From Squalus acanthias (taxonomy: Eukaryota), in contig CM059449.1 of the NCBI GenBank assembly GCA_030390025.1, forward strand, positions 13,454,001 through 13,518,000: a stretch of 64,000 nucleotides of DNA, given 5' to 3'. Under the pieces are notes generated by a model. It did not search any database. It was not told the origin of the DNA and saw only the letters and a list, made by a program, of their open reading frames with translations. How positions within the stretch are numbered: the stretch's first letter is position 1; every line of letters starts with the position of its first letter. This document shows, piece after piece, positions 7,852-59,749 of the stretch. The position numbers and the translations under genes are program-made.

Positions 7852-8043
7852 TCACTTCAGTGCACAGATTTGCTTGGTTTTCATGATCCTATTGGGTGTA
7901 GATTGGGTGCAGACAGCAAGATCCCACTGGTTTGAAGGGCTGGATCTTCTGGTGATCGGTGAGTTCACTGTGCAGTAGCTAGAAGAGGCAGTGTTGTTGC
8001 TATATGGCAGACTAGTCTCTTGTCTGAGACGAGGAGGTAGTGC
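7852..8043 (-). CDS. Receptor B exon 5, terminal cytoplasmic exon with SH3/SH2-binding motifs
   Basis: Acceptor tttgtaattgtaactcttag|, phase 0, open for 63 codons: ALPPRLRQETSLPYSNNTASSSYCTVNSPITRRSSPSNQWDLAVCTQSTPNRIMKTKQICALK*. Joining to exon 4 creates PALPPR. Confidence 0.72.
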   Translation of the reverse strand, partial: ALPPRLRQETSLPYSNNTASSSYCTVNSPITRRSSPSNQWDLAVCTQSTPNRIMKTKQICALK

Positions 8044-8674
8044 CTAAGAGTTACAATTACAAATAAAATCACATTTTTACCGATTCTATTTGCATTTCTT
8101 CAAACCATATTTTTTATTTTTATTTTGAGTGGTGAGAAATATCAACCGGAGAGAACAAATTTGTTCAGGAAGAAAAGTCAGGGACCTTTAATTGTTAAAA
8201 GAAGTACAATCGCCAGCATCGTCCGAAAGATTTAAAAATGACAATGAGGACTTCAAAATCGAATGGAATAACTTGCATTTATATAGCGCCTTTGGTGACC
8301 TCGGGACATCCCATTGCTTTACAGCCAATGAAGTATTTTTGAAGTGTAGCCACTATTGTAATGTAGGCAACACGGCAGCTGATTTACGCACAGCAAGATC
8401 CCACCACATTCAGCAACGTGCTAACCCCCAGATAATGGCAGTGTAAATGGACATGGGCCAGACGCAGAACAGGCGGAGTCGCGTTCGGTGCCTGGTGTAC
8501 GACACGCGCTGAGTGTCAGCTTGAACTCCAAGTGGGCAATTTTACCCTAACCCACCCGTCGGGAAGCTAACAGGATCGGGTACAAGAGTCTTTCCACCCA
8601 GAGGAGACAGTTCCACCAACCAAGTGGATCTAATATGCAGGACTATAATATTTAAATAATACAAATGATCTTAC

Positions 8675-8703
8675 TGGTAATGACTCCTGAAATTCAATTC
8701 TTT
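8675..8703 (-). CDS. Receptor B exon 4, short cytoplasmic exon
   Basis: Acceptor ttcctgttcatattccag|, donor CCA|gtaaga, 29 nt, phase 1->0; (E)RIEFQESLP. Bridges the phases of exons 3 and 5 exactly. Confidence 0.72.
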
Positions 8704-8804
8704 CTGGAATATGAACAGGAAATGTTATGCAGTTACATAAGGCAGACAAGGTATCATTGTTCTCAATCAGTAGTGTTTACTTTTTCATTTTCTCCCCACC
8801 CCTC

Positions 8805-9252
8805 AAGTCCAGAACAAAGCAGCCCGCTTGATTGGCACCCCATCCACCACCTTAAACATTCACTCCCTCCACCACCGGCATACCGTGGCTGCAGTGTGTA
8901 CCATCTACAAGATGCACTGCAGCAACTCGCCAAGACTTCTTCTGCAGCACCTCCCAAACCCGCGACCTCTTCCACCTAGAAGGACAAGGGCAGCAGGCGC
9001 ATGGGAACACCACCAAGTTCCCCTCCAAGACACACGCCATCCTGACTTGGAAATATATCGCCGTTCCTTCATCGTCGCTGGGTCAAAATCCTGGAACTCC
9101 CTCCCTAACAGCACTGTGGGAGCACCTTCACCACACGGACTGCAGTGGTTCAAGAAGGCGGCTCACCACCACCTTCTCAAGGGCAATTAGGAATGGGCAA
9201 TAAATGCCGGCCTTGCCAGCGATGCCTACATCCCATAAACGAATTAAAAAAT
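8805..9252 (+). mobile_element. Non-LTR retrotransposon 3' fragment (RTEX/L2-CR1-group-like)
   Basis: IGTPSTTLNIHSLHHRHTVAAVCTIYKMHC..SWNSLP..FKKAAHHHL plus A-rich tail; near-identical copies at 19158 and 34475. Confidence 0.7.
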
Positions 9253-10547
9253 CCCTCCTCCATTCCTGTCATGAAGACACTGACTTTGGCTGGGCACAGT
9301 GCCAGGCGTGCCTGCCTGTCTGCAATACCTGATCCAAATGGCCATTCTTCATATATAGTCTGTAAACAGGAAGGTTAGAATTCTCCCATCAGCATTTCAC
9401 TCGCAGGCTCCAGGCACCTATTGGGAAATTCGAATCGCCAACCCATAATTTTTCCAAGTAAGGGATGACACCCAGAACATAGGAACAGGAGGAGGCCATT
9501 CAGCCCCTCGAGTCGGTTCCACCATTCAAATAGATCCTGGCTGATCTGTATCTTAACTCCATCTGCCCACACTGGTTCCCTAACCCTTAATACCTTTGCC
9601 TAACAAAAATCTATCGATCTCAGTTTGGAAATTTTCAATTGACCCTCAGCCTCCACAGCTTTTCGGGGGAGAGAGTTCCAGATTTCAAATACCCTTTGTG
9701 TGAAGAAGTGTTTGTTGACATCACCCCTGAACGGCCTAGCTCTAATGTTAAGGTTGCGCCCCCTTGTTCTGGGCTCCCCCCACCCCAAGATCTGTGGAAG
9801 GGGGAGAACCAACAGCACAGCTGAAGAGGTCTTTGTTTCGGGCTATTAAAAGAGTGGTCACACAGTGAATTTATTTTGGAGAGGAAGTGTGGGCGAAGTG
9901 AAGGAGAAAGCAGCTTCCGGCATTGTAGTGGAATGAGTGGGGTGACCATATGGAGTTCCATGAAAGATGTGGGTGGACATATGGCTGGAGGAGATTCAAC
10001 ACATGTCCAGCGACTTAACAGAAGGATGGGCATCTTGAGGTCCATGCTGTGTAGTCAGGCAGCCAATGGAGTTCGTCAATGATAGGGATGATGAATAAAA
10101 AGAAGGAAAAGAATTGCATTTATATAGCGCTTTTCACAACCTCAGGGATCCCATAGCGCTTTACAGCCAATTAAGTACTTTTGAAGTATAGTCACTGTTG
10201 TAATGTAGGAAAACGTTGTTAGGTAAGGGTATTAGGGAGTGTATGGAGTAAATGACGGGTAAATGGAGTTGAGATATAGATCAGCTATGATCTAATTGAA
10301 TGACGGAACAGGCTCCAGGGGCGTAATGGCCGACTAATGTTCCTATAAAATAATATGGGGCTTTTGTGTGACAGAGGTTTCATAGTGAAGTGATATCGAT
10401 CAACTAGAGCTTGTGAAGGGTGGCAGAAGCTAGCCAAGAGATGATTAGAGGAATCTGTTCGTGAGGCAGTGAAAGTCTAGATTAAGGGTTCAGTCCCAGA
10501 GGGAGTGAGAGAGAGAGAGAAAAAAGGATGCAAGCGGGTGATTTTCT

Positions 10548-11010
10548 GAAGAAAGACTTGCATTTATAAAGCACCTTTCACGACCACCGGACGTCTCAAA
10601 GCACTTTACAGCCAATGAAATACTTTTGGAGTGTAGTCATTATTGTCATGTGGGAAACGCAGCAGCCAATTTGCACACAGCAAGCTCCCACAAACAGCAA
10701 TGTGATCATGACCAGATAATCTGTTTTTGTTATGTTGATGGAGGGATAAATATTGGCCGGGACACCGGGGATAACTCCCCTGCTCTTCTTCAAAATAGTG
10801 CCGTGGGATCTTTTACGACCACCTGAGAGAGCAGACGGGGCTTCGGTTTAACGCTTCATCCGAAAGACGGCACCTCTGACAGTGCAGCACTCCCTCAGCA
10901 CTGCACTGGAGTGTCAGCCTAGATTTTTGTGTTCAAGTCCTGGAGTTGGACTTAGAACCCACAACCTTCTGACTCAGAGGCGAGGGATGCTACCAACTGA
11001 GCCACAGACA
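10548..11010 (-). mobile_element. Deu-domain tRNA-SINE (SacSINE1-like)
   Basis: Full-length match to the other copies. Confidence 0.8.
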
Positions 11011-11835
11011 CAGTTGGGCGTTAGCAGTATGAACTGTCAACTTAAGTATCTCCTGCATCTCTTTAAGCTTCTCCACAGTGGGGAAATATCATCCTTGTGA
11101 CTGACTGGATGGGGGCAAGAGGATTTTACTCAGGATTGAACAGGATGCTAAGGTTGCACACAAGCTGCTTCACACTAAGCGATTGCTGGGAGGATTGATG
11201 GGACTGAAACCCGAGGTATATAACTGTCAGAAGTGGAAAAGGATGGATTCAGTTTTGGCGAAATTTCGGCTAATTCATTATTTGCTATCAGATGATCAGG
11301 CAACGGCCACAGTGGAATCAAAGGTGCTGGAGAAATGCTTTTGAGCGTTATCAGCATGAACTGTCAACTGAAGTATCTCCTGCATCTCCTTAGATTTCTC
11401 CATCGGGGCTCTTTCAAAAATGAATAAAGCTAAAAAAAGGTTTAGGGTCAAACCTAACTCTACTATGCATTTGTTTCAGGTGTTAGCCTTTCCCCCTTAC
11501 GTTTGTTTACTCAGTCATTGCTGGCGACCTGATTGGGTGGTACCTTAGACTCACTGAGCTCATCCATGAGTGAATTCCTTGCACGGTTTGAGTCTACAGA
11601 GCTTGCTAAAGGCGACAATGGCACATTGCTTGTGTTGCCATAGCCAGCTGCCCAGCTACAATGTATAACTGTGCACACGCTGGGAAGAATGGAGACTCCT
11701 CTCCACTGTTCGGTGAGCACTTTATGTGCTGTGCTGGTTATTCATGATAAACTGCACGGCCAGTTTCCCCACAATTACAGACAGCTATTTATAGTTTATA
11801 CACTTGGAAAGCTCATGTGACGTGCAGCCTAGCAC

Positions 11836-12548
11836 CTGGATGTCCTTTCACACCAGTCACTGAAAGCAAACATGCAGGTGCAGCAAGCAGTTAGGGAGGC
11901 AAATGGTATGTTGGCCTTCATTGCAGGAGGATTTGAGTACAGGAGCAAGGATGCCTTACTGCAGTTATACAGGGCCTTGGTGAGACCACACCTGGAGTAC
12001 TGTGTGCAGTTTTGGTCTCCTTACCTAAGAAAGGATATACTTGCCATAGAAGGAGTGCAGCGAAGGTTCACCAGACTGATTCCTGGGATGGCAGGACTGT
12101 CGTATGAGGAGAGATTGGGTCGACTTGGCCTGTATTCACTAGAGTTTAGAAGAATGAGAGGGGATCTCATTGAAACGTATAAAATTCTGACAGGGCTAGA
12201 CAGACTGGATGCAGGGAGGATGTTTCCCCTGGCTGGGGGGTCTAGAACGAGAGGTCACAGTCTCAGGGGTAGGACATTTAGGACTGAGATGAGGAGAAAT
12301 TTCTTCACTCAGAGGGTGGTGAATCTGTGGAATTCTCTACCACAGAAGGCTGTGGAGGCCAATCACTGGATATATTTAAGAAGGAGATAGATAGATTTCT
12401 GGACACAAAAGGCATCAAGGGGTATGGGGAGAGAGCGGGAATATGGTATTGAGATAGAGGATCAGCCATGATCATATTGAATGGCGGAGCAGGCTCGAAG
12501 GGCCGAATGGCCGACTCCTGCTCCTATTTTTCCATGTTTCTATGATTC
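11836..12548 (+). mobile_element. CR1 LINE 3' fragment flanked by a 50-bp duplication
   Basis: ORF 11872-12390 ([13 protein letters not shown]..); flanks 11786-11835 and 12549-12598 are near-identical. Confidence 0.9.
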
Positions 12549-13066
12549 TATTTATAGTATAGACACTTGGAAAGCTCAGATGACGTGCAGCCTAGCACAA
12601 AATGGACAATCAGTCAGAAAAAAGCACAGCGTTCGACTTTCAATAATGCGATTAAAAAATGTGCACAGATAATTACCGTATGTTTCATCTCTTCTCGATA
12701 GTTTAACCGTATGTGACCTACAAGATAAGAGCAAGTTAAATGCAATTATATACTGCACATTGCTAACTTCTAAATGTTAATTGATACATAACTAATGATG
12801 TATTATTCTGTTACATACCATTTAAACCTTGTGATCACTAAATTAAAAGGAAAGATCGTAAGATTAGAAAACTTTACAAATACTTTTTTTTAGTTTCTTG
12901 GCGTTTAACAGAGTAAATAACAGCTATATTGATCGTTACATAAACACAGATGTAACTAAATGGCATCATTTTCATAATCATGGCCATGTTTGCCACAAAT
13001 CTGTAATCACAGATATGCCTCACAACGAACAGAAACACCGCAGTCACATCTGCATAAAAACCTTAC

Positions 13067-13207
13067 CTTTGCTTTGATGGTAGAGCCGACAGAGCAGGAC
13101 CAGGATCACAACGGTGAACAACCCCAGCGCTCCCAGCAATCCCAGCGTCAGTGGAAGTGCTCGACCGTCGGTTGAAACGCTCGGTGGGGGACAAACAGTT
13201 GCCTTCT
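13067..13207 (-). CDS. Receptor B exon 3, Cys-containing stalk plus uncharged transmembrane helix
   Basis: Acceptor ttgtcttgtcccag|, donor AAG|gtaagg, phase 1-1. (K)KATVCPPPSVSTDGRALPLTLGLLGALGLFTVVILVLLCRLYHQSK. Confidence 0.88.
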
Positions 13208-13777
13208 CTGGGACAAGACAACAAAGATGGCTTATTTCACAACTCACTGTTTAGTCATTCATCTTCTAATCTGAAACATCTACAGAAACCGCAATGGGGA
13301 ACGTGCATTTTTATGGCAACTGTAGCTTAGAGGTTATGTTACTGGACCAGTCAATCCTAACAAGCCTGGACAGATGGTCCAGCTCAAGGCATGAGTTCGA
13401 ATCCCACCACGGCAGCTTAAATTCAGTTAATTAAATAAATCTGAAATAAACAAAAGTTAGTATTATAGAGTCATAACGGCACAGAAGGAGGCCATTCGGC
13501 CCATCGAGTCTGTGCCGGCTCTCTGTAGAGCAATCCAGTCAGTCCCACTCTCCCGCTCTATCCCCGTAGCCCTGCAAGTTTATTTCCCTCAAGTGCCTAT
13601 CCAGTCTCCCCTTGAAGACATTGAGTGTGTCCGCTTCCACCACTTGTGTCGGCAGAGAGTTCAAGGTCCTCACCACTTGCTGCGTAAAAAAGTTTTACCG
13701 CACAGCCCCCCTGTATCTCTTGCCCAAAATCTTAAATCTGTGTTCCCTAGTCAAATATGATCTGCCTTTTACAAATC

Positions 13778-18651: not shown

Positions 18652-18990
18652 TGTCAGTTATTATAAGTTGTGTTCCTGTCCCGTTTCCTTTCCCAACGTT
18701 CACAATTTCCACCTCGCAGTAGTAAAAATCCGAGTCCATCTTCGCTAAAGTGTCGATTTCAAGGAAGGCCATTTTTTCTGCAAACAATTTCGACCCTGAC
18801 TTCGTTATCCGGCTCTGATAGAAAGGATTCCGATCCAACACTTCCATGTTTTGTGAGGCCCGCCTCCAAACAACTCGTCCGACAGTACTATTCGCTTCAA
18901 AAGTGCAGTTCAGCTGCACCGATCCTCCTTCTGTTACATTAATGGCATCTGGGGACTGGAACACTCTGATCTCACTCATCAACCCATTGT
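18652..18990 (-). CDS. Receptor B exon 2, VJ-type Ig V domain, NKp30/NCR3-like
   Basis: Acceptor atttatactctag|, donor A|gtgagt, phase 1-1, 339 nt. (D)NGLMSEIRVFQSPDAINVTEGGSVQLNCTF..VGRVVWRR..EVLDRNPFYQSRI..DSDFYYCEVEIVNVGKGNGTGTQLIITD. Has the canonical Cys/Trp/DxxxYxC and a J-like GxGT; resembles recalled NKp30 motifs IGSVTWFR / EVRNGTPEFRGRL / YVCRVEVLGLGVGTGNGTRLVV. Confidence 0.93.
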
Positions 18991-23984: not shown

Positions 23985-24042
23985 CGACATGTAAAAGTAT
24001 TGTCACCAAATTCAAGAACATCCAGATGTGACTAGCTGGCAT
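23985..24042 (-). CDS. Receptor B (NKp30/NCR3-like single-IgV receptor) exon 1, signal peptide
   Basis: gtcaaaATG context; MPASHIWMFLNLVTILLHV+G then donor gtgagt; 58 nt, phase 1, matching the V-exon phase; same length as the receptor A leader. Confidence 0.8.
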
Positions 24043-26372: not shown

Positions 26373-29307
26373 TCAGTACCCCATTCCTGCTTTCTCGCCA
26401 TACCCCTTGATCCCCCTAGTTGTGAGTGTTATATCTAACTCCCTTTTGAATATATTTAGCGAACTGGCCTCAACAACCTTCTGTGGAAGAGAATTCCATA
26501 GATTCACCACTCTCTGGGTGAAGAAGTTCCTCCTCAGCTCAGTCTTAAATGGCTTCCCCTTAATCCTTAGACTGTGACCCCTGGTTCTAGTTTTCCCTAA
26601 CATTGGGAACATTCTGCCCACATCTAATTTGTCTAAACCAGTCAGGATTTTAAATGTCTCTATAAGATCCCCCCTCATTCTTCTGAACTCCAGAGGATAC
26701 AAGTTCAGTTGACCCAATCTTTCTTGATATGTCAGTCCGGCCATCCCAGGAATCAATCTAGTGAACCTTCGCTGCACTCCCTCAATAGCAAGAATGTCCT
26801 TCCTTAAGTTAGGAGACCAAAACTGTGCACAATACTCCAGGTGTGGCCTCACCAAGGCCCTGTACAACTGCAGCATCACCTCCCTACTCCTGTACTCAAA
26901 TCCCCTTACTATGAAGGCCATCATTCCGTTTGCTTTCTTGACTGCCTGCTGCACTTGCATTCCCACCTTCAGTGACTGATGTACCATGACACCCAGGTCT
27001 CGTTGCACCTCCCCTTTCCCTAATCTGCCACCATTCAGGTAATAGTCCACCTCTCTATTTTTACCACCAAAGTGGATAACCTCACATTTATCCACATTGT
27101 ACTTCATCTGCCATACATTTGTCCATTCACCCAACCTGTCCAAGTCACTCTGTAGCCTCCTAGCATCCTCCTCATTGTTCACACTGCCTCCCAATTTAGT
27201 GTCATCCGCAAATTTGGAGATATTACATTTAATCCCTTCGTCCAAATCATTAATATATAATGTAAACAGCTGGGGTCCCAGCACCGAACCCTGCGGTACC
27301 CCGCTGGTCACTGCCTGCCATTCTGAAAAGTACCCATTTACTCCTACTCTTTGTTTCCTGTGTGCCAACCAGTTCTCAATCCACGTCAACACATTACCCC
27401 CAATCCCATGTGCTTTAACTTTGCTCACCAATCTCTTGTGTGGGACCTTGTCGAAGGCCTTCTGAAAGTCCAAATACACCACATCTACTGGTTCCCCCCT
27501 GTCCACCCTATTGGAAACATCCTCAAAAAATTCCAGAAGATTTGTCAAGCATGATTTCCCTTTCACAAATCCATGCTGACTTGGACCTATCATGTCGCCA
27601 CTTTCCAAATGGTCTGTTATGACATCTTTAATAATTGCTTCCATCATTTTACCCACGACCGATGTCAGGCTGACCGGTCTATAATTCCCTGCTTTCTCCC
27701 TCCTTCCTTTTTTAAAAAGAGGGGTTACATTGGCCACCCTCCACTCCATCGGAACTGATCCAGAGTCTAAGGAATGTTGGAAAATGATCGTCAATGCATC
27801 CACTATTTCCAAGGCCACCTCCTTAAGTACTCTGGGATGCAGACCATCAGGCCCCGGGGATTTTTCAGCCTTCAGTCCCATCAATTTCCCCAATACCTTT
27901 TCCCGACTAATAAGGATTTCCCTCAGCTCCTCCCTCTTACCAGATCCTCTGACCCCTTTTATTTCCGGCAGGTTGTGTGTGTCCTCCACAGTAAACACCG
28001 AACCAAAGTACTTGTTCAATTGATCTGCCATTTCCTTGTTCCCCATTATGACTTCCCCTGTTTCCGACTGCAGGGGACCTACATTTGTTTTTACTAACCT
28101 CTTTCTTTTTATATATTTATAGAAGCTTTTGCAGTCCATTTTAATGTTCTCTGCAAGCTTCCTTTCATATTTTATTTTCCCTGCCCTAATCAAACCCTTC
28201 GTCCTCCTCTGCTGAGTTTTGAAGTTCTCCCAGTCCCCGGGTTGCTGCTACTTCTGGCCAATTTGTATGCAACTTCCTTGGTTTTAATACTATCCCTGAT
28301 TTCCCTTGTTAGCCATGGTTGAGCCACCTTCCCTTTTTTATTTTTACGCCAGACCGGGATGTACAATTGTTGTAGTTCATCCATGCGATCTCTAAATGTC
28401 TGCCATTGCCCTTCCACTGATAGCCCCTTAAATATCGCTTGCCAATTTAACCTCGCCAATTCACGCCTCATACCCTCAAAGTTGCCCTTATTTAAGTTCT
28501 GGACCATGGTCTCTGACTTAACTGTTTCCTTCTCCATCCTAATGTAGAACTCCACCATACTATGGTCACTCTTCCCCAGGGGGCCTTGTACCACAAGATT
28601 GCTGATTAGTCCTTCCTCATTACACAACACCCAGTCCAGGATGGCCTCCCCTCGAGTTGGTTCCTCAACATATTGGTTTAGGAAACCGTCCCTTAAACAC
28701 TCCAGGAAATCCTCCTCCACCGTATTGCTTCCAGTTTGAGTAGCCCAATCTATATGCATATTAAAGTCACCCATGATAACTGCCGTGCCTTTTTTGCACG
28801 CATCTCTGATTTCCTGTTTCATACCCTCCCCCACCTCACTACTGATGTTTGGAGGTCTGTACACAACTCCCACTAACGTTTTCTGCCCTTTGGTGTTCTG
28901 CAGCTCAACCCATATTGATTCCACATCCTCCAAGCTGATGTCCTTCCTAGCTGTTGCATTAATCTCCTCTTTAACCAGCAATGCTACCCCACCCCTTTTC
29001 CTTTTATTCTATCCTTTCTGAATGTTGAATACCCCTGGATGTTCAGTTCCCAGCCTTGATTGTTCTGGAGCCACGTCTCTGTAATCCCAATCACATCGTA
29101 TCCATTAACATCTATTTGCACAGTCAATTCATCCACCTTATTACGGATACTCCTTGCATTAAGACACAGAGCCTTTAGGCTTGTTTTATTAACATCCTTT
29201 GTCCTTTTAGACTTATGATTTAGTATGGCCCTTTGTGTTTCTTGCCTGTGTTTACTCGGCCTTCCCCTATTGTTTCTCACCCTTCTAACATTTGTTTCTG
29301 ACTGCAT
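26373..29307 (-). pseudogene. CR1 ORF2 (APE endonuclease plus reverse transcriptase), broken by two frameshifts
   Basis: Pieces 28984-29307, 28190-28981, 26373-28193; ITETWL, GDFN, SDH, YRPVSL, GVPQGSVLGP, FADD. Confidence 0.9.
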
Positions 29308-29354: not shown

Positions 29355-30299
29355 TTAGTTTAAATCCTCCCGAACTGCTTTAGCAAATATTACCCTGAGG
29401 ACATCGGTTCCAGTCCTGCCCAAGTGCAGACCGTCCCTTTTGTACAGGTCCCACTTCCCCCAGAACTGGTTCCAATGCCTCAGGAATTTGAATCCCTCCC
29501 TCCTGCACCACTGCTCAAGCCACGTATTCAATCTCACTATCCTGTTCTCTCTATTCTGATTAGCACGTGGCCCTGGTAGCAATCCAGAGATTACTACCTT
29601 AGAGGTCCTACTTTTTAATTTAGCTCCTAGCTCCCTAAATTCTGCTTGTAGGACCTCTTCCCGCTTTTTACCTATATCGTTGGTACCTACATGCACCACG
29701 ACAGCTGGCTGTTCACCCTCCCTCTTCAGAATGTTCTGCAGCCGCTCCGAGACATCCTTGACCCTTGCACCAGGGAGGCAACATACCATCCTGGAATCTC
29801 GGTTGCGGCCACAGAAACTCCTGTCTATTCCCCTTACAATTGAGTCCCCTATCACTATAGCCCTACCACTCTTTTTCCCGCCCTGCTGTGCAGCAGAGCC
29901 AGCCATGGTGCCATGAACCTGGCTGCTGGTGCCTTCCCCTGGTAGGCCATCTCCCCCAACAGTATCCAAAGCGGCATACCTGTTTTGGAGGGAGATGACC
30001 ACAGGGGATTCCTGCACTACCTTCCTGATATTGCCCTGCTTCTTGGTCACCCATTCACTGTCTGTCCTAGCCTTTACCTGCGGTGTGGACAACTCACTAA
30101 ATGAGCGATTCACCGAGTTCTCGGCATCGTGCATGCTCCAGAGTGAGTCCACCCGCAGCTCCAGCACCGCCATGTGGGCTGTCAGGAGCTGCGGCTGGAC
30201 ACACTTCCCGCACACGTAGTTGTCAGGGACACTGGAAGTGTCCCTGGTTTCCCACATGGCACAGGAGGAGCATGAAACGGGTCCGAGACTTCCTGTCAT
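29355..30299 (-). CDS. CR1 ORF1p (Zn-finger, leucine zipper, SGNH esterase-like domain)
   Basis: CSSCAMW..CGKC, LELRVDSL, VIGDSIVRG, CLPGARV, VHVGTND, DGLHL; intact 314 aa. Confidence 0.88.
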   Translation of the reverse strand: MTGSLGPVSCSSCAMWETRDTSSVPDNYVCGKCVQPQLLTAHMAVLELRVDSLWSMHDAENSVNRSFSELSTPQVKARTDSEWVTKKQGNIRKVVQESPVVISLQNRYAALDTVGGDGLPGEGTSSQVHGTMAGSAAQQGGKKSGRAIVIGDSIVRGIDRSFCGRNRDSRMVCCLPGARVKDVSERLQNILKREGEQPAVVVHVGTNDIGKKREEVLQAEFRELGAKLKSRTSKVVISGLLPGPRANQNRENRIVRLNTWLEQWCRREGFKFLRHWNQFWGKWDLYKRDGLHLGRTGTDVLRVIFAKAVREDLN

Positions 30300-33200
30300 G
30301 ACTTAACCCTTATGTTACTTTATTACTAAAATTTAAACTTATTTATCTTAGGTCCAGGAGTTAAGTCCCTGAAAACAAAATATAAAATCGAACCTACCTT
30401 TTAAATTCCCTCTACCCCTAAAGGTTAGAGGAGGTGGGAGGGTGGGAGTCACTACTAGTGTAGTGTCTCGGGTTTAGCAACCGCTTCACCTATATACAGG
30501 TACCAATGAATTGGCCCCGCCCCCTGCCTTTGAAAAAGCCCGCGAAGCTCTTTCCCCGCTAGGGAAAAAGGCCACGTAGGTGAGTTTAATGACTCACCTC
30601 AGGCCTCCGCCGCTCCAACCAGGTCCGCTCCTCCTTCCCCGCTGCCGACCGCTCTGTGGGAGAGAGAAAGAAAGGCTCCTCCTCCCCCGCTGTCGACGCT
30701 GGTCTGAGTCCCAATCTACTCAACCTCTCCTCATATGTCCACCCCCTCATCCCCGGAATTAACCGAGTGAACCTTCTTTGTACTGCCTCGAGAGCAAGTA
30801 TGTCTTTTCTTAAGTATGGACACCAAAACTGTATGCAGTACTCCAGGTGCGGTCTCACCAATACCCTATACAACTGCAGCAATACCTCCCTGTTTTTATA
30901 TTCTATCCCCCTAGCAATAAAAGCCAACATTCCATTGGCTTTCTTGATCACCTGCTGCACCTGCATACTAACTTTTTGATTTTCTTGCACCAAGACCCCC
31001 AGATCCCTTTGTACTGCAGTACTTTCCAGTTTCTCGCCATTAAGATAATAACTTGCTCTCTGATTTTTCCTGCCAAAGTGCATAACCTCACATTTTCCAA
31101 TATTGTATTGCATCTGCCAAATCTCTGCCCACTCTCCCAGCCTGTCTATATCCCCTTGTAGGTTTTTTATGTCCTCCTCACTCTCTACTTTCCCTCCCAT
31201 CTTTGTATCATCTGCAAACTTTGATATGTTACACTCGGTCCCCTCCTCCAAATCGTTAATATAGATTGTAAAGAGTTGGGGACCCAGCACCGACCCCTGC
31301 GGAACACCACTGGCTACTGGTTGCCAGTCCGAGAATGAACCATTTATCCCAACTCTCTGCTTCCTGTTAGATAACCAATCCTCCACCCATGCCAGAATAT
31401 TACCCCCAATCCAGTGATTTTTTATCTTGAGTAATAATCTTTTATGTGGCACCTTGTCGAATGCCTTCTGGAAGTCTAAATACACTACATCCACTGGTTC
31501 CCCTTTATCCACCCTGTACGTTATGTCCTCAAAGAACTCGAGCAAATTTGTCAGACATGACTTCCCCTTCATAAAGCCATTCTGACTTTGTCCTATTAAA
31601 TTATGTTTATCTAAATGTTCCGTTACTGTCTCCTTAATAATAGACTCCAAAATTTTACCCACCACAGATGTTAGGCTAACTGGTCTATAATTTCCAGCCT
31701 TCTGCCTACAACCCTTTTCAAATAAGGGTGTTACATTAGCAGTTTTCCAATCTGCCGGGACCTTTGCTGAGTTCAGGGAGTTTTGGAAAATTATTACCAA
31801 AGCATCCACAATCCCTACTGCCACTTCCCTCAAGACCCTAGGATGTAAGCCATCAGATGCAGGGGATTTATCCGTCTTGAGTCCCATTATTTTACTGAGT
31901 ACCAATTGCTTAATAATTTTAATCGTATTTAGCTCCTCCCCCACTAGAGCCCCCTGTTTGTCCAGTGTTGGGATATTCTTAGTGTCCTCTACCGTAAAGA
32001 CTGAAACAAAATATTTGTTCAGCATTTTTGCCATCTCCATGTTTCCCACCATTAATTTCCCGGTCTCATCCTCTAAGGGACCTACGTTTGCCTTAACCAC
32101 CCTTTTTCTTTTTATATAACTATAGAAACTCTTGCTATCTGTTTTTATATTTTTTGCTAATTTATTTTCATAGTCTATTTTCCCTTTCTTAATCAATCCT
32201 TTAGTTACTTTTTGTTGTCTTTTGAAGACTTCCTAATCTTCTATCCTCCCACTAAGTTTGGCTACCTTATATGTCCTTGTTTTTAGTTGGATACTTTCTT
32301 TAATTTCTTTACTTAGCCATGGATGGCTGTCATTTCTTTTACACCCTTTTTTCCTCAGTGGAATATATTTATTTTGAAAGTTGTAAAATAACTCCTTGAA
32401 TGAACACCACTGCTCATGTACCGTCTTACCCTTTAATCTATTTTCCCAGTCCACTTTAATCAATTCTGCTCTCATGCCATCATAGTCTCCTTTATTCAAG
32501 CTCAGTATGCTTGTTTGAGAACCCACCTTCTCACCCTCTAATTGGATATGGAATTCAACCATGTTATGGTCACTCATTCCAAGGGGATCCTTAACTAGGA
32601 CATTATTAATTAATCCAGACTCATTACACAGTACCAGGTCCAAGGTTGCTTGCCTCCTTGTAGGATCAGTTACATACTGCTCAAGAAATCCATCCCTAAG
32701 ACACTCAATAAACTCTTCCTCAAGGCTGCCCTGCCCAATTTGATTTGTCCAGTTAATATGATAGTTAAAATCCCCCATAATTATAGCTGTTCCCTTATTA
32801 CATGCCCCAACAATTTCCTGATTAATACTTCTTCCAACAGAGTTGCAACTATTAGGAGGCCTATATACTACGCCCACCAGTGTTTTTTTCCCCTTATTAT
32901 TCCTAATCTCTACCCAAACTGTTTCATTATCCTGATCTTTTGACCCAATATCATTTCTCTGTATTACAGTGATTCCTTCCTTTATTAACATAGCCACCCC
33001 CCCTCCCCTTCCTTCCTGCCTGTCCTTCCTGATTGTTAAATACCCTGGCATATTTAATTCCCAGACGTTGTCACCCTGCAGCCATGTTTCTGTAATGGCC
33101 ACAAGATCATACCCATACATAGTTATTTGTGCCGTTAACTCATCAATTTTGTTACGAATGCTACGTGCATTCAGATAAAGAACTTTCAAATGTGTTTTGC

Positions 33201-41579: not shown

Positions 41580-41606
41580 TTATGACCCACTGCTGGTCAC
41601 ATTATC

Positions 41607-49170: not shown

Positions 49171-49635
49171 CTTTACAGCCAATGAAGTACTTTTGAAGTG
49201 TAGTCACTGTTGTAATGTAGGAAATGTCATGGTAAATATTATTTTTTAAGCAAATAAAACCATTCATCTTTGGGCGAAGTATGCATTCATGATGTAAAGG
49301 TCACAAAGTTTGTCCCGAGTTCCATGGTGGGGGAGAATTAATAGTTTATTCCAAATGAACCTCCATTTCATTGTTACTTCTGGATCACCAATCTTCTCAT
49401 GCAAAGATAGATACTTTGGAGGTGGCAGATTTCGTAATCGGACCTTATTCGCTATAACGATTCATTGGCTGTTGACATGTAAAATGATAGTTAAACATCA
49501 TAAGTTGGACAGTCAATGCCATACAGTAAAAGATATCACATCGTAATTTACATTTGATAAGCGGACGCTGTGGGGGCCCTCACATTCTAGTTTATTTTTT
49601 CCCTCTGTATTTTAATTGCGGTTAGATTTGCTGTT

Positions 49636-51405: not shown

Positions 51406-51544
51406 TACTAATGGCAGAAGGGACAGCTGCCAATTGTGGGGCAACGAGAAGGAGGGATATCCCCACAAGAGGCCAGAGTCAGAAAAACGGTGAGTTCTGA
51501 GGCGTGGCGCTCTTTGATTGAGCAGAGCACAAGATACATACAGC

Positions 51545-51643: not shown

Positions 51644-51782
51644 CTAAACATTAATTGGATAGGGAATGGTTAATAATGAACATTACTTTGTTTCCAAATT
51701 TAGCAATGGATATCCCTTGGTCGAACAGACTTCATTCACATATAACCGTTGAGATATAAAGCATCAACAAGCGAGTCCGTAC

Positions 51783-51895
51783 CTTTACCAGACAGGCCAC
51801 AACGCCGAAGAGGAGGAGGAAGACGGTGAGAATGCATTTTCCGACCAGAATCCCACTGGTTGCAGGCGAAATAGATTCATTTCCACAAAGCAGAC
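51783..51895 (-). CDS. Receptor A exon 3, Cys stalk plus Lys-containing transmembrane helix
   Basis: Acceptor cactttccattttag|, phase 1; (R)LLCGNESISPATSGILVGKCILTVFLLLFGVVACLVK; donor AAG|gtacgg (alternative CTG|gtaaag 6 nt earlier, both phase 0). Confidence 0.85.
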
Positions 51896-53390: not shown

Positions 53391-53624
53391 AAATGGAAAT
53401 GACTGAAATGGAATCCGGGTCTCAGAGGTGAAAGGTCAGTTGTACTAACCACCCAGGCCCTATTTATGCACAGCCATTTGGTTTTCCCTATGGCCTTTCT
53501 GAGCAAGATTACAGATTTAACTCAATTGGGGAAAATTATGGGGCTATACAACTGTGTTTCGAACTTCAGCCTGCTACCAACTGAAGAGACTCACTTTGGG
53601 ACAACACCTGATAACGCGGAAACA

Positions 53625-54415: not shown

Positions 54416-54795
54416 AAAACGCCACCCAGTAATCGAGACTGAAATGGAATCCAGGTCTCGGAGGTGAAAGGTCAGTTGTACTAACCACCCAGGCACTATT
54501 TATTCACCTTAAGGTCAGATACATTTACATTTCTTGTTATGCTTTACTTGAGGCTCTGTGTTATTTCCGATTCTTCCAACTTTGCTGCTTACCTTAACAA
54601 GACAGTAAATGAGCCTCAATAATACATTTACATAGAAATCGTAAATATAAATTTTATTAATGAATTAATCCAAATCTGGCTTCTTAAGGTTACAGCCAAT
54701 GCTTTTTTTTTGACATTTCCTTTCCCCTTTATACATCTGAGCCATTCAGGAATAAGTACTTGTTCTGTAAAGGAATCAGTCCATTTGCTACTTAC

Positions 54796-55140
54796 GTTTT
54801 ACTTCAAGTTTGGTGCCGTTCCCGATGCTGGTTTCCCCATTCATTGCTTTCACCATGCAGTAATAGGTGTCAGAATCGTGCCGTCTGAGGTCGGAGATTT
54901 TGATGAAAATTTTCCTTTCAATGAAATGGCTGGGGTTAGACTTCTCCAGTCGGTTCCTAAGCAGCAAGTCGCCATCTAAATCCGTCACGTTTTTTGTGGA
55001 CGCACCGCGTGACCAGAAGACTTGGCTGACGGGCCTCTCGACCAGGTCATCCCCATAGCTACAGTACAGCGTCACCGAGTCTCCTTCTGTTGCATTTACA
55101 GACTGAGGGGACTGCAAAACCGTGACTCGCGACTGACCGG
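54796..55140 (-). CDS. Receptor A exon 2, VJ-type Ig V domain, NKp30-like
   Basis: Acceptor poly-T+cccag|, donor C|gtaagt, phase 1-1, 345 nt. (A)GQSRVTVLQSPQSVNATEGDSVTLYCSY..VSQVFWSR..RNRLEKS..IKISDLRRHDSDTYYCMVKAMNGETSIGNGTKLEVK, with canonical V-set residues and J-like GNGTKLEV. Confidence 0.93.
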
Positions 55141-55994
55141 CTGGGAAAAAAAAATCCAACTATTAGAAGCTTTAAAGGGCAATTGTAACCTAAACCGGCC
55201 ATTGGGGAAATGACTGGTGCAACGCTGGGTTTCCACCCCACTTGGTCTTCGTCTTCTTTCGGATGGTGGTGGCAAAGCAAATCAAATGTCAATATCCAAG
55301 TCAGATATCCAGGCCAAAGTTTCCTGTGAAACAGCGGAGATGTCGTGTAGGCCACCTGCGAATTTCCTCTGAGGGCAGTGCACGAACCAGGACATCAACG
55401 CTGCGTTCCTTGATTCGAGATATTTCGCATTTTGAGTGAGAGATGCCTTCGATGTTATGTTGGCATGTTCGATGGTTGGGCCTGCATCTAGTTCTCTTTG
55501 GTCCTGAAGAGGGCCGTTCGATTTGCTTGGTTTGCTACTGTCACCGGGTGGTCGATTTAACGACAAGTTCGGTGTCCTTTGGAACGACATCAGTTGTGAT
55601 CAGGGTGGGCCGCAAGAAGGCTGTCATCATCCGCCCTTGCTTGGTCTTACTCTCCAGTGGAAAGTCACATTGGGCGGGGGTATAAAACCAGCGGTCCACC
55701 CGACTCTGTGGGTTTCCCCCCCGCGAGTTAGGTTAAAATTACCATTTGTTTCACATCAGAACGAAGGCATGGTTTTCTATTAACATCGTAAATCTCCTAA
55801 ACATTGTCTTGCACAAACTTAATGTTACCGCTCTTAAGGCTTTCGAATCGGGTGGGCGTATTAACTATTTGTCCCGCTGGATCTTCCTCACGGTGACTAA
55901 TTGCTCCAACAGATTTTTTGTTCATATTTTGTCATATTGTCAGCCTAATTTTTACATATTAATGTTCTTGAGAATAACGGTTATGTACGGAGCC

Positions 55995-57345
55995 AGTTAG
56001 TTAGAGGAATACACTTCAAGAAGACATAGACAGGCTGGTGGAATCGTGCACACGTGGCAAATGAAATTCAACGCAGAGAAGTGTAAGGTGATACATTTTG
56101 ATAGGAAGAATGAGGAGAGGCCATACATATGAAATGGTACGATTTTAAAGGGGGTGCAAGAACAGAGAGACTTGGGGGTGTTTGTGCACAAATCTTTGAA
56201 GGTGACAGGACAGGTTAACAAAGCATAAGGGATCCTGGGCTATATAAATAGAGGTCATGATGTGGAGATGCCGGCGTTGGACTGGGGTGGACAAAAATGA
56301 GAAGTCGCACAACACCAGGTTATAGTCCAACAGATTTATTTAATTTTATAAGCTTTCGAAGCAGTTCGCTCCTTCGTCAGGTAAGTTAGCAATGAGAGAA
56401 TCTCCCAGAATTCACAATTTAAACCCAGACAAAATCTATTCACATTATTCGCTACAACAAAGAGCACAGCCAAGACAATGAGATATGCAGCCAGCAGGTG
56501 GTTTGACATGTTGGACCCCCTGGGACACATCTCATTGTCTTGGCTGTGCTCTTTGTTGTAGCGAATAATGTGAATAGATTTTGTCTGGGTTTAAATTGTG
56601 AATTCTGGGAGATTCTCTCATTGCTAACTTACCTGACGAAGGAGCGAACTGCTTCGAAAGCTTGTAAAATTAAATAAATCTGTTGGACTATAACCTGGTG
56701 TTGTGCGACTTCTCATTTATATAAATAGAGGCATAGAGTACAAAAACCAGGAAGTTATGCTAAACCTATATAAAATACTGGTTCGGCCCCAGCTGGAGGT
56801 ATTGTGCCAAATTCTGGGCACCACACTTTAGGAAGGATGAGAAGGCTTTGGAGAGGGTACAGAAGAGATTTACTGGAATGGTTCCAGGGATGAGGGATCA
56901 CAGCTACAAGGATAGACTGGAGAAGCTGGGGTTGTTCTCCTTAGAGCAGAGAAGGCGAAGGGATTTGATAGAGGTGTTCAAAATCATGGAGGGTTTAGGT
57001 AGAGTAAATAAAGAGAAACTGTTTCCAATGGCTGAAGGGTCGAGAACCAGAGGGCACAGATTTAAGGTGATTGACAAAAGAACCAGAGGCGACATGGGGA
57101 AAAACTAGTTTACGCAACGAGTGGTTAGGATTTGGAATGCACTGCCTGATAGGGTGGTGGATACAGATTCAATAGTAGCCTTCAAAAGGGAATTGGATAA
57201 ATACTTGAAGGAGAAAAAATTGCAGGGATATGGGGAAAGAGTGGGGGGAGTGGGACTGACTGGATTGCTCTTCGAAAGAGCCGGCACAGACTCGATAGGC
57301 CGAATGGCCTCCTTCCGTGCTGTACTATTCTATGACTCTATGATT
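55995..57345 (+). mobile_element. CR1 3' fragment interrupted by a Penelope-derived long hairpin
   Basis: WQMKFNAEKCKVIHF..ERVQKRFT..RTRGHRFKV. Confidence 0.83.
56255..56718. mobile_element. Penelope-derived palindrome: 190-bp near-perfect inverted arms, 44-nt loop, hammerhead in each arm
   Basis: Arms 56295-56484 and 56529-56718 (one mismatch by eye); TSD tatataaatagagg (56241-56254 / 56718-56731). Confidence 0.88.
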
Positions 57346-57431
57346 CAATTATTCTATGAATTTCTCTGTGCGCTATAGGGAATGAAAATGTAAATCAGTT
57401 TATAAAGAACAAGTTCACGATTTCATTACAC

Positions 57432-57975
57432 ATGAGACCACATTTGGAATATTGTGTGCAGTTCTGGTCACCTCACTATAGGAAGGACGTAGAAGCATTG
57501 GAAAGAGTGCAAAGGAGATTTACCAGGATGCTGCCTGGTTTGGGGGGGAGGTCTTATGAGGAAAGATTGAGGGAGTTGGGGCTTTTCTCTTTAGAGCGGA
57601 GGAGGATGAGAGGCGACTTAATAGAGGTTTATAAGATGATGAGGGGGATAGATAGAGTAGATGTTCAGAGACTATTTCCTCGGGTAGAGGCAGCTGTTAC
57701 AAGGGGGCATAACTATAAGGTGCATGGGGGGAGATATAGAAGGGATGTCGAGGTAGATTCTTTACTCAGAGTGGTTGGGGTGTGGAATGGACTGCCTGCT
57801 GTGATAGTGGAGTCGGACACTTTAGGAACTTTCAAGCGGTTATTGGATAAGCACATGGAGCACACCAGAGTGATAGGGAGTGTGATAGCTTGATCTTGGT
57901 CTCGGACAATGCTCGGCACAACATCGAGGGCCGAAGGGCCTGTACTGTGCTGTACTGTTCTATGTTCTATGTTCT
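57432..57975 (+). mobile_element. CR1 3' fragment
   Basis: ORF 57432-57893; (gttctat)n tail. Confidence 0.88.
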
Positions 57976-58721
57976 ATACACATTAACTTTCATCGTGTTT
58001 CTCCTTCACATGAAATCAGGATTTGATTAATTTAAAAAGTTGTATATAAAAATGTGACACAAGCCGATAAGATAGGTAAGAATTATTTTGAATAGTACAA
58101 TCACAGCCAGCTGCTATTTTGCAATAAGTTAATGTAGGTAACGATAAACATGTTAAATAATTTAATATATCTTGCTAAAAGGCTATACATTAACTTTCAT
58201 TCATGCAAAATGTCCTACTCAATAAACAACTGCTATTTTGGTTGCAGCGTTTAGATTACAACAGCATAGGGGCATTTATTGTTACTCCTGACCCGTGGAA
58301 GTCTAGGGTTTGAAACTGGTCGTATAAATCTTATTAAGAAAGCCAATATATCTCACAAAGTGAAGTTAATGCTGTAACAACAGGGAGGTAAAAAGTCACG
58401 CTATTACTTTGTTGATTAATAGCACCTATGGCAGATTGCAAATCATGAGTTACAGAGGGCATATGGCACAGAAAGAGACCATTCAGCCCAACCAGTCCAT
58501 GTCGGCGTTTATGCTCCACACGAGCCTCCTCCCGTCTTTCCTCATCTAAATCTATCAGCATAACCCTCTATTCCCTTCTCCCTCATATGCTTGTCTAGCC
58601 TCCCCTTAAATGCATCTATACTATTCGCTTCAACCACTCCCTGTGGTAGCGAGTTCCACATTCTCACCACTCTTTGGGTAAAGAAGTTTCTTCTAATTCC
58701 CTATTGGAGTTAATTGGCACG

Positions 58722-58842
58722 TCAATCAATCCATTCATTGCTAATCAATCTCTGGTACGTTATCAATCAAACAATCATGCTTTCAATCAATCAATCGGCC
58801 AATCAATGAAGCAATCAGCCTTGATTCAATCATTCAATCAGT
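58722..58842 (+). repeat. Degenerate (AATC)n microsatellite
   Basis: Repeated tcaa/aatc units. Confidence 0.65.
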
Positions 58843-58861
58843 CAACTGGTCCCCTTATATT

Positions 58862-59157
58862 TAAGAACATAAGAAATAGGAGCAGGAGTCAGCCATTTGG
58901 CCCTTCGAGCCTGCTTTGCCATTCAATCAGATCATGGCTGATCTTCTACCTCATCTCCACTTTCCTGCACTATCCCCATATCCCTTAATATTCAAAAATC
59001 TATCCATCTCTGTCTTGAATATACTCAACGACCGAGCCTCCACAGCCCTCTGGGGTAGAGAATTCCAAAGATTCACCAGAAGAAATTTCTCCTCATCTCA
59101 GTCCTAAATGGCCGACCCCTTATTCTGAGACTGTGACCCCTGGTTCTGGACTCCCCA
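58862..59157 (-). mobile_element. CR1 3' fragment
   Basis: Reverse complement of the 321/22898 subfamily tail. Confidence 0.82.
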
Positions 59158-59691
59158 TTTCTATTTGGAAGGATGGAATGTAATAATACGTACTGTTAAT
59201 TCTTATTCTAAATTATACCAGGGTGTGGAAGACCGAGATCATACATGACAACTCGATCTCGGGGACAAACGTCTAAAATTCATTGAACTGCTAAAACTCT
59301 TGCTCAGTGCAGTATGACTCCGTTCCCAGGGACGAGAATTTGGGGACCGCCAAAATAGGATGGGGACCCCGGGCCCTTGAGCGGGAGCCTGTGCACCGGC
59401 TACTGTTTCCACAGTACTGATGATAATTAAAATCTCCCTATGGAAAAAGATATGCCATATAAATAATTATTAAGCCATTACATTTAAATTATTTTCTCGC
59501 TCATAATAACCATCACGCATATTTTGAAGCCTTCTTGAAGCTGCATATTTCGCTAGTTTCTGTATCGTGTGGATCTCTCAACCAATCGACTTTTAATTAT
59601 ACGGGTAAACTACCTGTAATTCTGGAATAAAGAACAAATCAACGGGAGGAATAGAATTAAGGAGCAGTAATAGTGAAGAAAATAGACTTAC

Positions 59692-59749
59692 CATATAATA
59701 AAACCAGCAGCATTAAATTGACGCCAATGATTTTATTGAGTGCAGTCAT
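59692..59749 (-). CDS. Receptor A (NKp30/NCR3-like single-IgV receptor) exon 1, signal peptide
   Basis: agaaagATG; MTALNKIIGVNLMLLVLLY+G then donor gtaagt; 58 nt, phase 1. Confidence 0.82.

Follow-up and report, generated by a model that had tools for sequence, protein, structure and literature searches.

Two tandem NKp30-like (NCR3) receptor genes of probable activating and inhibitory type in Squalus acanthias

Two intact receptor genes on the minus strand

We analysed a 64-kb stretch of Squalus acanthias DNA (hereafter the window), which carries two intact tandem receptor genes, referred to here as receptor A and receptor B. As the earlier note proposed, they are same-strand neighbours, and when read on the minus strand both follow one plan: a 58-nt phase-1 leader, a single VJ-type V exon, and an exon encoding a Cys stalk and the transmembrane (TM) segment. 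The genes are separated by approximately 25 kb of LINE-rich DNA, and LINEs are abundant in both the introns and the intergenic DNA of the span. In this reading, all 11 exons have AG/GT splice flanks and consistent phases. Besides A and B, no further non-repeat genes were found in the window, nor was any classical MHC class III marker found within its 64 kb; shark NCR3 is stated to be MHC-linked in an excerpt of one published source (PMC12227049). The features are as follows.

Receptor A gene, 59749-49445, minus strand: four exons
A exon 1, 59692..59749, minus strand: leader, 58 nt, ATG at 59749, phase 1 out, donor GTAAGT
A exon 2, 54796..55140, minus strand: VJ-type V-set domain, 345 nt, phase 1 in and out, ending GNGTKLEVK (Pfam V-set 5.2e-12)
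A exon 3, 51783..51895, minus strand: Cys stalk and TM with Lys, 113 nt, phase 1 to 0
A exon 4 (probable), 49445..49468, minus strand: PMNRYSE plus TAA, located by tblastn with orthologue tails
Receptor B gene, 24042-7852, minus strand: seven exons
B exon 1, 23985..24042, minus strand: leader, 58 nt, phase 1, donor GTGAGT
B exon 2, 18652..18990, minus strand: VJ-type V-set domain, 339 nt, phase 1 in and out, ending GTGTQLIITD (Pfam V-set 3.1e-08)
B exon 3, 13067..13207, minus strand: Cys stalk and uncharged TM, 141 nt, phase 1 in and out
B exon 4, 12819..12837, minus strand: 19-nt micro-exon, whole codons ITRFK, phase 1 to 2, AG and GT flanks
B exon 5, 12677..12717, minus strand: 41-nt micro-exon, SHTVKLSRRDETY, phase 2 to 1
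B exon 6, 8675..8703, minus strand: 29-nt micro-exon, RIEFQESLP, phase 1 to 0
B exon 7, 7852..8043, minus strand: last 63 codons plus TGA, containing YSN and the ITIM-like SSYCTV

Within 55100-62000, exon 1 of A was the sole candidate to satisfy a strict search (ATG, hydrophobic stretch, phase 1 and donor), and 17 of its 19 leader residues are identical to those of the Cetorhinus orthologue P0002. Orthologue proteins set the start of exon 3 at 51895 and ruled out an upstream in-frame acceptor after 51956. The earlier note had recognized the TM Lys of A, which stands, and had identified no Tyr-motif tail; a probable last exon of seven residues is added here. When orthologue tails were searched by tblastn against the 27.7 kb from A exon 3 to B exon 1, three of the four gave their best match at this exon, two beginning exactly at 49468 (E 0.043 and 0.75) and the third at 49444, just beyond the stop (E 0.094). 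This weak but consistent evidence suggests a short last exon of A at 49468-49445; the cytoplasmic end of A comprises fewer than 10 residues.

The leader of B aligns with the 19-residue leaders of B-type proteins from Heptranchias, Scyliorhinus, Chiloscyllium, Ginglymostoma and Stegostoma. B had been described as a five-exon gene with a tail of about 80 residues, a model that missed the 19- and 41-nt micro-exons; the gene has seven exons and a tail of approximately 100 residues, encoded by four small exons (19, 41 and 29 nt and the last). Each micro-exon was the top-scoring candidate in its search by BLOSUM score: exon 4 among three AG-N19-GT candidates in the intron (17 versus -5), exon 5 among 12 open candidates of 19 in all (35 versus 8), and exon 6 among nine open candidates of 20 in all (29 versus 2). 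Exon 4 aligns with an I-x-R-L-K segment of the orthologues, exons 4 and 5 are found in every full-length orthologue, and exon 7 aligns with orthologue tail ends through Q-E-T, Y-S-T-[VI] and S-N-Q blocks. Since exons 4 and 5 total 60 nt, the earlier, shorter join stays in frame, and it could exist as an isoform.

These gene models bear on an alternative in which either gene, or both, has fallen silent or is decaying within a large cluster of rapid turnover, so that the intact frames would be a snapshot and no evidence of function. Several observations fit such decay: exon 4 of A ends in a stop where orthologues continue for 9-30 residues, four orthologues share a C-terminal Tyr and the usual stop position, both of which B has lost, and the introns and intergenic DNA are filled with LINEs. 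Furthermore, no spliced RNA is available among the 24 S. acanthias runs listed, none of which is on record as RNA; reads from four runs yielded only repeat-derived contigs and a single unspliced contig that matches the window exactly over 7910-8089. However, none of the 11 exons is interrupted, their splice sites are canonical and their phases match, the V domains retain their Cys-Trp-Cys core and J-like motif, and three micro-exons, which would be expected to be lost quickly without selection, are intact. A short A tail also appears to be tolerated, as the Cetorhinus orthologue has a tail of nine residues. We therefore regard decay of either gene as very improbable.

V domains and their shark orthologues

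The V domain of each receptor is encoded in one exon with a J-like G-x-G-T-x-L end. The two domains share only 40 of 109 residues (37%), in agreement with the earlier view that they are strongly diverged and do not result from a recent duplication. Against solved structures, the B domain matched human NKp30 best, four sequences of which took the top four places (E 4.1e-10 to 5.6e-10), and the first non-NKp30 match, TCR alpha, followed at 2.9e-05, about five orders of magnitude behind. For the A domain, NKp30 reached 35.6 bits and did not stand out from pIgR (39.8), an scFv (36.7) and an scTCR (36.1), and a profile of A-type proteins, which spans leader, stalk and TM besides the V domain, ranked Ig light chains at the top, NKp30 being absent from the best 60 of 2727 matches. 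As indirect support for A, the nurse shark NCR3 protein QTT61901.1, its nearest lineage, had the four NKp30 sequences as its best solved-structure matches (E 7e-10). The best non-orthologue matches of A were shark NCR3 proteins, in a collected protein set that is biased because it was gathered with B as the query.

NCR3-like proteins from Cetorhinus, Scyliorhinus torazame, Heterodontus and Mustelus show 65-75% identity to the A domain (P0002, P0004 and P0141 are so named, P0003 by its UniRef name only). We built a V-domain tree of 39 rows and 116 columns, without Ig or TCR outgroup, in which A and B each fell into a group of their own spanning several shark orders: an A clade of six rows (support 98/98) and a B clade of ten rows (88/98) that includes the nurse shark NCR3 QTT61903.1. 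The nearest non-orthologue of A, QTT61901.1, with 46% V identity, was placed as sister of the A clade (95/77, not starred), and the Xenopus laevis Ig-like protein P0097 was placed without resolution. The B clade includes, and the A clade adjoins, shark NCR3 proteins named as such by their authors; NKp30 ranks first in the structure comparison for B only. Membership of the NKp30/NCR3-like family is supported for both receptors, their orthologues being named NCR3 or NCR3-like and grouping with or next to nurse shark NCR3. The ancient origin that had been proposed is likewise supported by the breadth of both clades, and the tree indicates that A and B are old separate lineages.

Membrane spans and cytoplasmic tails

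A Lys lies at the same position, within the outer third of the TM, in six of six A-type rows. The minus-strand reading confirmed an uncharged TM in B, and seven of the eight B-type rows carry no TM charge, the remaining one being a Heterodontus protein with an Arg in the outer TM. The contrast noted in S. acanthias, of a charged span with a short tail in A and an uncharged span with a long Tyr-bearing tail in B, is thus kept among the orthologues.

All three tail motifs reported earlier for B, namely ITIM-like, YxN and PxxPxR, are present in the sequence, the first two as SSYCTV and YSN in the last exon and the third running from the 29-nt exon into the last one. YxN and PxxPxR are not conserved, both being missing at the aligned positions in all six orthologues when the alignment was read by eye. 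A Y-[SC]-[TN]-[IV] motif, by contrast, aligned in 7/7 full B-type tails, and in S. acanthias B it conforms to the ITIM consensus (S/I/V/L)-x-Y-x-x-(I/V/L) as SSYCTV in exon 7. The idea that an NKp30-type receptor with such a tail was undescribed is not supported, as nurse shark QTT61903.1 (P0158) has the same architecture. Annotations from sturgeon, lungfish, frogs and axolotl also include NCR3-like proteins whose tails carry YxxV/I.

The Tyr motif of B might instead serve as a YxxPhi sorting or endocytosis signal or as another SH2 docking site, which would make B a co-receptor or a scavenger-type receptor. The conserved core is merely Y-x-x-[IV]; the residue at -2 of the conserved Tyr, which helps to define an ITIM, is S, L, P, P, P, P and R across the seven sequences, that is, Pro or Arg in five of them, and a canonical ITIM occurs anywhere in the tail in only four of the seven full B-type tails. 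Across the seven aligned tails we found no second conserved ITIM or ITSM, and a C-terminal L-T-Y motif present in four of them is absent from S. acanthias B. Nevertheless, the S. acanthias motif fits the ITIM consensus, comparable tails of other shark NCR3-like proteins contain the clear ITIMs VEYATI, VVYATV and VQYSAL, and a neutral TM combined with a long Tyr-bearing tail is the usual inhibitory design. A non-inhibitory role thus appears unlikely to us, and we favour an inhibitory-type B.

Comparison with known receptors and proposed working

The two receptors present opposite signalling modules in one cluster, with a Lys-bearing TM and a seven-residue last exon in A versus a neutral TM and a tail of approximately 100 residues in B. 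This invites comparison with KIR2DL/2DS, Ly49, SIRP alpha/beta and PIR, in which an ITIM-type tail and a basic TM with a short tail likewise occur at one locus. Such classical paired receptors have near-identical ectodomains and recent, recurrent origins. True pairing in the KIR, SIRP or PIR sense would mean that A and B bind the same or overlapping ligands, for example B7-H6-like ones, and jointly set an activation threshold. Besides the adjoining of opposite designs on one strand and the conserved TM contrast, a Mustelus read-through gene model (P0156) repeats the A-then-B order, a complete A-type protein being followed by a B-type leader and V domain, and A-type and B-type proteins lie on one contig in Cetorhinus and likewise in Heterodontus. 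Forcing A and B into a single clade was also not rejected (p-AU 0.183). Unlike the near-identical ligand-binding domains of classical pairs, however, the A and B ectodomains are just 37% identical and belong to lineages kept separately across shark orders. Because of this divergence and separate evolution, a shared ligand cannot be assumed, A and B do not constitute a classical paired receptor, and the paired-receptor label in its usual sense, which the earlier note had proposed, is not retained. We consider true pairing a distinctly remote prospect and treat A and B as neighbouring paralogues.

Both receptors resemble human NKp30 in overall build, with one V-like domain that has a J-like end, followed by a stalk and a single TM; in A, a basic TM residue is likewise combined with a short tail. 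In an excerpt of PMC5371597, NKp30 is described as carrying a TM Arg and pairing with TCR-zeta/FcRgamma, whereas receptor A carries a TM Lys. B departs from NKp30 in that its TM lacks a basic residue and that NKp30 has nothing comparable to the long Tyr tail. Human NCR3 is a single gene, whereas the shark genes form a multigene family. The closest precedent for the Lys of A is human NKp44 (NCR2), whose TM Lys pairs with DAP12 according to the same excerpt (PMC5371597) and which also has a single V domain; its V domain belongs to an unrelated lineage, and we claim no sequence relationship.

Within sharks, the nurse shark NCR3 proteins of the family named by Kinlein et al. (2021, Immunogenetics 73:333) are, like A and B, single VJ-type V receptors. 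QTT61903.1 resembles B, with 58% V identity, a stalk Cys, a neutral TM, micro-exon-type tail segments and a Y-S-T-V motif. The three nurse shark proteins examined (QTT61903.1, QTT61901.1 and QTT61898.1) all have a neutral TM, without the TM Lys and minimal tail of A; the family reportedly contains five further subtypes. In Xenopus, non-rearranging V-type genes linked to MHC class III, termed XMIV, are reported to include some with ITIMs, which would embody the same idea as B.

In summary, we put at roughly 75% the probability that A and B are intact tandem members of the elasmobranch NCR3 (NKp30-like) family, A of activating type and B of inhibitory type, belonging to old paralogous lineages. 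Receptor A is predicted to be a type I membrane protein whose single VJ-type V domain does not rearrange and which has a stalk Cys and a TM Lys. Like other basic-TM immunoreceptors, it would depend on an ITAM adaptor with an acidic TM to reach the cell surface and would signal activation, following the basic residue-adaptor rule outlined in the same excerpt (PMC5371597). Given the Lys precedent of NKp44, a DAP12-type partner seems more likely than the Arg/CD3-zeta arrangement of NKp30. Receptor B shares the leader, V and stalk plan of A, but combines it with a neutral membrane span and a tail of about 100 residues, whose Tyr motif, once phosphorylated, would recruit SH2 phosphatases and lead to inhibition. 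As old paralogous lineages lying side by side, A and B would each probably have their own ligand preference.

A more speculative extension, which we hold to be doubtful, is that the tandem A-then-B arrangement is an elasmobranch functional module predating the split of the living shark orders, in which A derives from an inhibitory-type ancestor and is co-regulated with B. Under this proposal, A would have lost the micro-exon tail and gained the TM Lys, its sister lineage QTT61901.1 being of inhibitory type; it would pair with a DAP12-like adaptor instead of CD3-zeta/FcRgamma and, together with the ITIM-like B, would set thresholds for B7-family ligands. If true, this would represent the oldest known inhibitory-to-activating receptor transition. 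As they stand, receptors A and B are a new example of the already described shark NKp30 (NCR3) family, rather than a new kind of system.

Two NCR3-like genes and their relatives

The window is free of N runs, and scanning its six frames revealed a pair of V-like open frames, at 55159-54791 and 19030-18647 of the minus strand. Both frames matched the Pfam V-set domain, with values of 5.2e-12 for the first, belonging to receptor A, and 3.1e-08 for the second, belonging to receptor B. The exon models of the two genes were fixed by natural proteins of other cartilaginous fish, mostly automatic gene models themselves, searched exon by exon; in all searches the queries were single exons or natural proteins rather than a joined spliced model. 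A script run on each exon separately, without joining them, found AG and GT flanks at 11 of 11 exons, with phases in agreement.

Exons of receptors A and B
59749-59692, minus strand: receptor A leader, 58 nt, phase 1
55140-54796, minus strand: receptor A V exon, 345 nt
51895-51783, minus strand: receptor A stalk and membrane-span exon, 113 nt
49468-49445, minus strand: receptor A probable last exon, seven codons and stop
24042-23985, minus strand: receptor B leader, 58 nt, phase 1
18990-18652, minus strand: receptor B V exon, 339 nt
13207-13067, minus strand: receptor B stalk and membrane-span exon, 141 nt
12837-12819, minus strand: receptor B micro-exon, 19 nt
12717-12677, minus strand: receptor B micro-exon, 41 nt
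8703-8675, minus strand: receptor B micro-exon, 29 nt
8043-7852, minus strand: receptor B last exon

The tandem described in the earlier note was thus largely right as observed, with the tail of receptor B now corrected and a last exon of receptor A added. Receptors A and B are intact and belong to the NCR3-like family of sharks; in membrane span and tail they are built in opposite ways, and this difference is conserved across orders.

The receptor A V frame matched three proteins of eight candidates, from Cetorhinus maximus and Scyliorhinus torazame, all carrying the name 'natural cytotoxicity triggering receptor 3(-like)' in NCBI or UniRef, and the receptor B V frame matched one partial Cetorhinus model of four candidates. 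A full HMMER scan with the receptor B V exon returned 296 proteins at E<=0.001, six of them at E<=1e-30, and its close single-V matches were NCR3-like or uncharacterised proteins from Heterodontus, Stegostoma, Chiloscyllium and Pristis. Using the Heterodontus protein as query added Heptranchias, Scyliorhinus canicula, Mustelus asterias, Chiloscyllium plagiosum and the nurse shark (Ginglymostoma) protein QTT61903.1, which its depositors named natural cytotoxicity triggering receptor 3.

Among all solved structures, four human NKp30 sequences were the top matches of the receptor B V domain (E 4.1e-10 to 5.6e-10), followed by a TCR alpha chain at 2.9e-05. For the receptor A V domain, NKp30 scored 35.6 bits, on a par with pIgR, scFvs and a single-chain TCR, and a profile of A-type proteins (orthologues of receptor A in other sharks), which includes leader, stalk and membrane span, placed Ig light chains first, with NKp30 not among the top 60 of 2727 matches. 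The first match of receptor A beyond its orthologues was the nurse shark NCR3 protein QTT61901.1 (46% identity), ahead of the B-type proteins, the orthologues of receptor B, within a set biased by having been gathered with receptor B as query. QTT61901.1 in turn had NKp30 in all top four places among solved structures (E 7e-10). The family placement of receptor A rests mainly on its nearest relatives. At the sequence level the NKp30-family reading holds.

A V-domain tree of 39 rows and 116 of 137 columns, built with IQ-TREE and without an Ig or TCR outgroup, contained a starred A-type clade of six rows (98/98) and a B-type clade of ten rows (88/98) that takes in QTT61903.1 and a sawfish fragment. 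The A-type clade was sister to QTT61901.1 (95/77, not starred). The backbone lacked resolution, a single clade of A and B was not rejected (p-AU 0.183), and the tandem may or may not go back to a local duplication.

Membrane spans and cytoplasmic tails

To compare membrane spans, the most hydrophobic stretch of 21 residues was taken from every protein. A lysine occupied the same place in all six A-type rows, namely the window exon, Cetorhinus, two S. torazame proteins, Heterodontus and the N-terminal part of the Mustelus protein, whereas seven of eight B-type rows lacked a charged residue in the span. The contrast between an activating-type and an inhibitory-type receptor, proposed in the earlier note, is thus conserved among the orthologues as far as their sequences go. 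The B-type exception, P0006 of Heterodontus francisci, has an arginine in the outer part of the span and keeps a long ITIM tail, recalling receptors that combine a basic membrane residue with an ITIM.

According to PMC5371597, a basic membrane residue finds its partner in an Asp of the adaptor, which may be DAP12, TCR-zeta or FcRgamma, lysine going with DAP12 (NKp44) and arginine with TCR-zeta or FcRgamma (NKp30, NKp46). Receptor A would accordingly depend on an ITAM adaptor with an acidic membrane span, and its lysine suggests a partner of the DAP12 type, by analogy with NKp44. For receptor B, signalling would run through the conserved tyrosine motif and would most likely be inhibitory. Both receptors may form disulphide-linked dimers by way of their stalk cysteines.

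The third exon of receptor A could also be opened from an upstream in-frame acceptor (after 51956); this start was rejected, as in orthologue proteins the exon begins at the equivalent of 51895. Reading this stalk and membrane-span exon as a TCR-beta-like connecting peptide was likewise dropped, since a phmmer search of its 37 residues against all solved chains returned nothing at E<=10. Within the 27.7 kb from receptor A exon 3 to receptor B exon 1, the probable last exon was the best tblastn match for three of four orthologue tails; two matches began exactly at 49468 (E 0.043 and 0.75) and the third at 49444 (E 0.094), just beyond the receptor A stop. A TAA stands in frame after its seven codons, so that this exon encodes 7 residues; A-type orthologue tails run 10-31 residues beyond the 21-residue membrane window, corresponding to 9-30 encoded after the stalk and membrane-span exon. 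On the minus strand at 49406-49468, the frame past the TAA still resembles the longer Scyliorhinus and Heterodontus tails, suggesting that the tail was secondarily shortened in S. acanthias.

The 19- and 41-nt micro-exons of receptor B had been missed in the earlier note, and every full-length receptor B orthologue includes them. As a control, the intron concerned was combed for all AG-N-GT candidates of equal length, and each was scored against the orthologue segments. The 19-nt exon scored 17 against -5 for the runner-up (three candidates), the 41-nt exon 35 against 8 (12 open candidates of 19) and the 29-nt exon 29 against 2 (nine open candidates of 20). Because the 19- and 41-nt exons together measure 60 nt, the shorter join proposed earlier is in frame and could be an isoform. 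Joining exon 3 directly to exon 7 was rejected: it reaches a stop after ten codons in phase 1, and the orthologues have the intervening exons.

Aligned exon by exon, the tails of the window gene and six full-length orthologues all share the tyrosine motif Y-[S/C]-[T/N]-[I/V] (7/7). In the window it reads SSYCTV and matches the ITIM consensus; across species, position -2 of this tyrosine holds P in four tails and S, L or R in the other three, and a canonical ITIM occurs somewhere in the tail in four of the seven (window, Heterodontus, Ginglymostoma, Stegostoma). The tyrosine that ends the 41-nt exon forms Y-x-x-I/V across the next junction, again in four of seven tails. Four B-type orthologues carry a C-terminal L-T-Y motif; Heptranchias, S. 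canicula and the window are without it, and in the window a cysteine lies near that place and the reading frame continues past the usual stop. The YxN and PxxPxR motifs pointed out in the earlier note are not conserved: by eye, the column aligned with YxN is without tyrosine in 6/6 orthologues, and PxxPxR is lacking at the aligned place in the same number. An ITAM was also considered for this tail and rejected, as inspection of the orthologue tails by eye found no conserved YxxL/I pair at ITAM spacing.

Arrangement of the tandem and public sequencing runs

Receptor A lies upstream of receptor B on the same strand, with approximately 25 kb between the stop of A and the start of B. Two LINE copies lie in tandem in this intergenic DNA, with open frames for reverse transcriptase and endonuclease and an ORF1 of esterase type.

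LINE features between receptors A and B
26376-28247, minus strand: first copy, reverse transcriptase ORF (RVT_1, 1e-34)
28193-29008, minus strand: first copy, endonuclease
29358-30302, minus strand: first copy, GDSL-esterase-type ORF1
30589-32232, minus strand: second copy, reverse transcriptase
32236-33357, minus strand: second copy, endonuclease

A tblastn search of the window with 22 family proteins detected no family exons beyond the 11, except a weak frame at 54539-54607 (minus strand) in receptor A intron 2. Its likeness to the 3' end of the receptor A V exon is weak (E 0.4-0.85) and extends from the Y-x-C motif to a degenerate J-like motif, with DNA about half identical to the exon end; a partial duplication may have left it as a relic, or the likeness may be due to chance.

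In Mustelus asterias, the 337-aa protein P0156 starts as a complete A-type protein and continues directly with a leader and V domain of B type. It is a read-through annotation merging two neighbouring genes, indicating that the A-then-B order recurs in Mustelus. A-type and B-type proteins also share one contig in Cetorhinus and in Heterodontus. The V domains of A and B are only 37% identical (40 of 109 residues) and separately conserved, which argues against the label of 'paired receptors' given to them earlier; ligands that differ or only partly overlap are expected.

The interval 7800-13300 was matched by 24 public sequencing runs, none on record as RNA, with a best word share of 0.31. Contigs of four runs (X1, X2, X5 and X7) were nearly all repeat-derived. 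In these four, none of the 15 read joints examined (of 15 + 684) matched an exon junction, and depth over receptor B exon 3 was zero. A 180-letter contig of X1 is identical to window 7910-8089 and continues through the acceptor of the final receptor B exon without splicing, so that this run contains same-species DNA or pre-mRNA. The run data neither support nor refute splicing of A and B. The intron between the 41- and 29-nt exons of receptor B (8100-12600) consists mostly of repeats, which show very high summed contig depth in all four of these runs, from three organisms.

Relation to known NCR3 genes and meaning

Shark NCR3 is described as a non-rearranging, MHC-linked VJ-domain gene in the available parts of two papers (PMC12227049; PMC10751288), the first citing eight nurse shark GenBank entries (MT914154-914161) in its methods. 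The accessible portions of these two and of PMC10450919, PMC12272517, PMC6514059, PMC12619710 and PMC5371597 hold no description of membrane or tail features of shark NCR3, of the lysine form or of the A-B tandem. Among the sequences found here, three nurse shark proteins (QTT61898.1, QTT61901.1 and QTT61903.1) all have neutral membrane spans and a tyrosine in the tail, and two have YxxI/V, as VEYATI in QTT61901.1 and as PVYSTV and LTYAQV in QTT61903.1. These three belong to the set of Kinlein et al. 2021, who reportedly described eight divergent nurse shark NCR3 subtypes and their MHC linkage, and whose text or supplements may cover the features in question. For Xenopus, Ohta et al. 2006 reportedly described V-type genes with ITIMs in the class III region.

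Sturgeon, lungfish, frogs and axolotl also have annotated NCR3-like proteins whose tails carry YxxV/I, and together with those of the nurse shark they take away the novelty that the earlier note had tentatively suggested for the receptor B tail. The tandem does not represent a novel type of receptor system. Public records already contain the family, its range of forms among sharks and the tail of B type.

With our analysis, two members of the NCR3 family from one more shark have exact models with comparative support, among them three micro-exons of a kind that ORF-based annotation misses. In several shark orders, NKp30-like lineages with a lysine-bearing span and short tail, and with a neutral span and tyrosine-bearing tail, have existed together, apparently as neighbours, thereby making the timing of activating and inhibitory wiring in the NKp30 family testable by ordinary adaptor and phosphatase assays.
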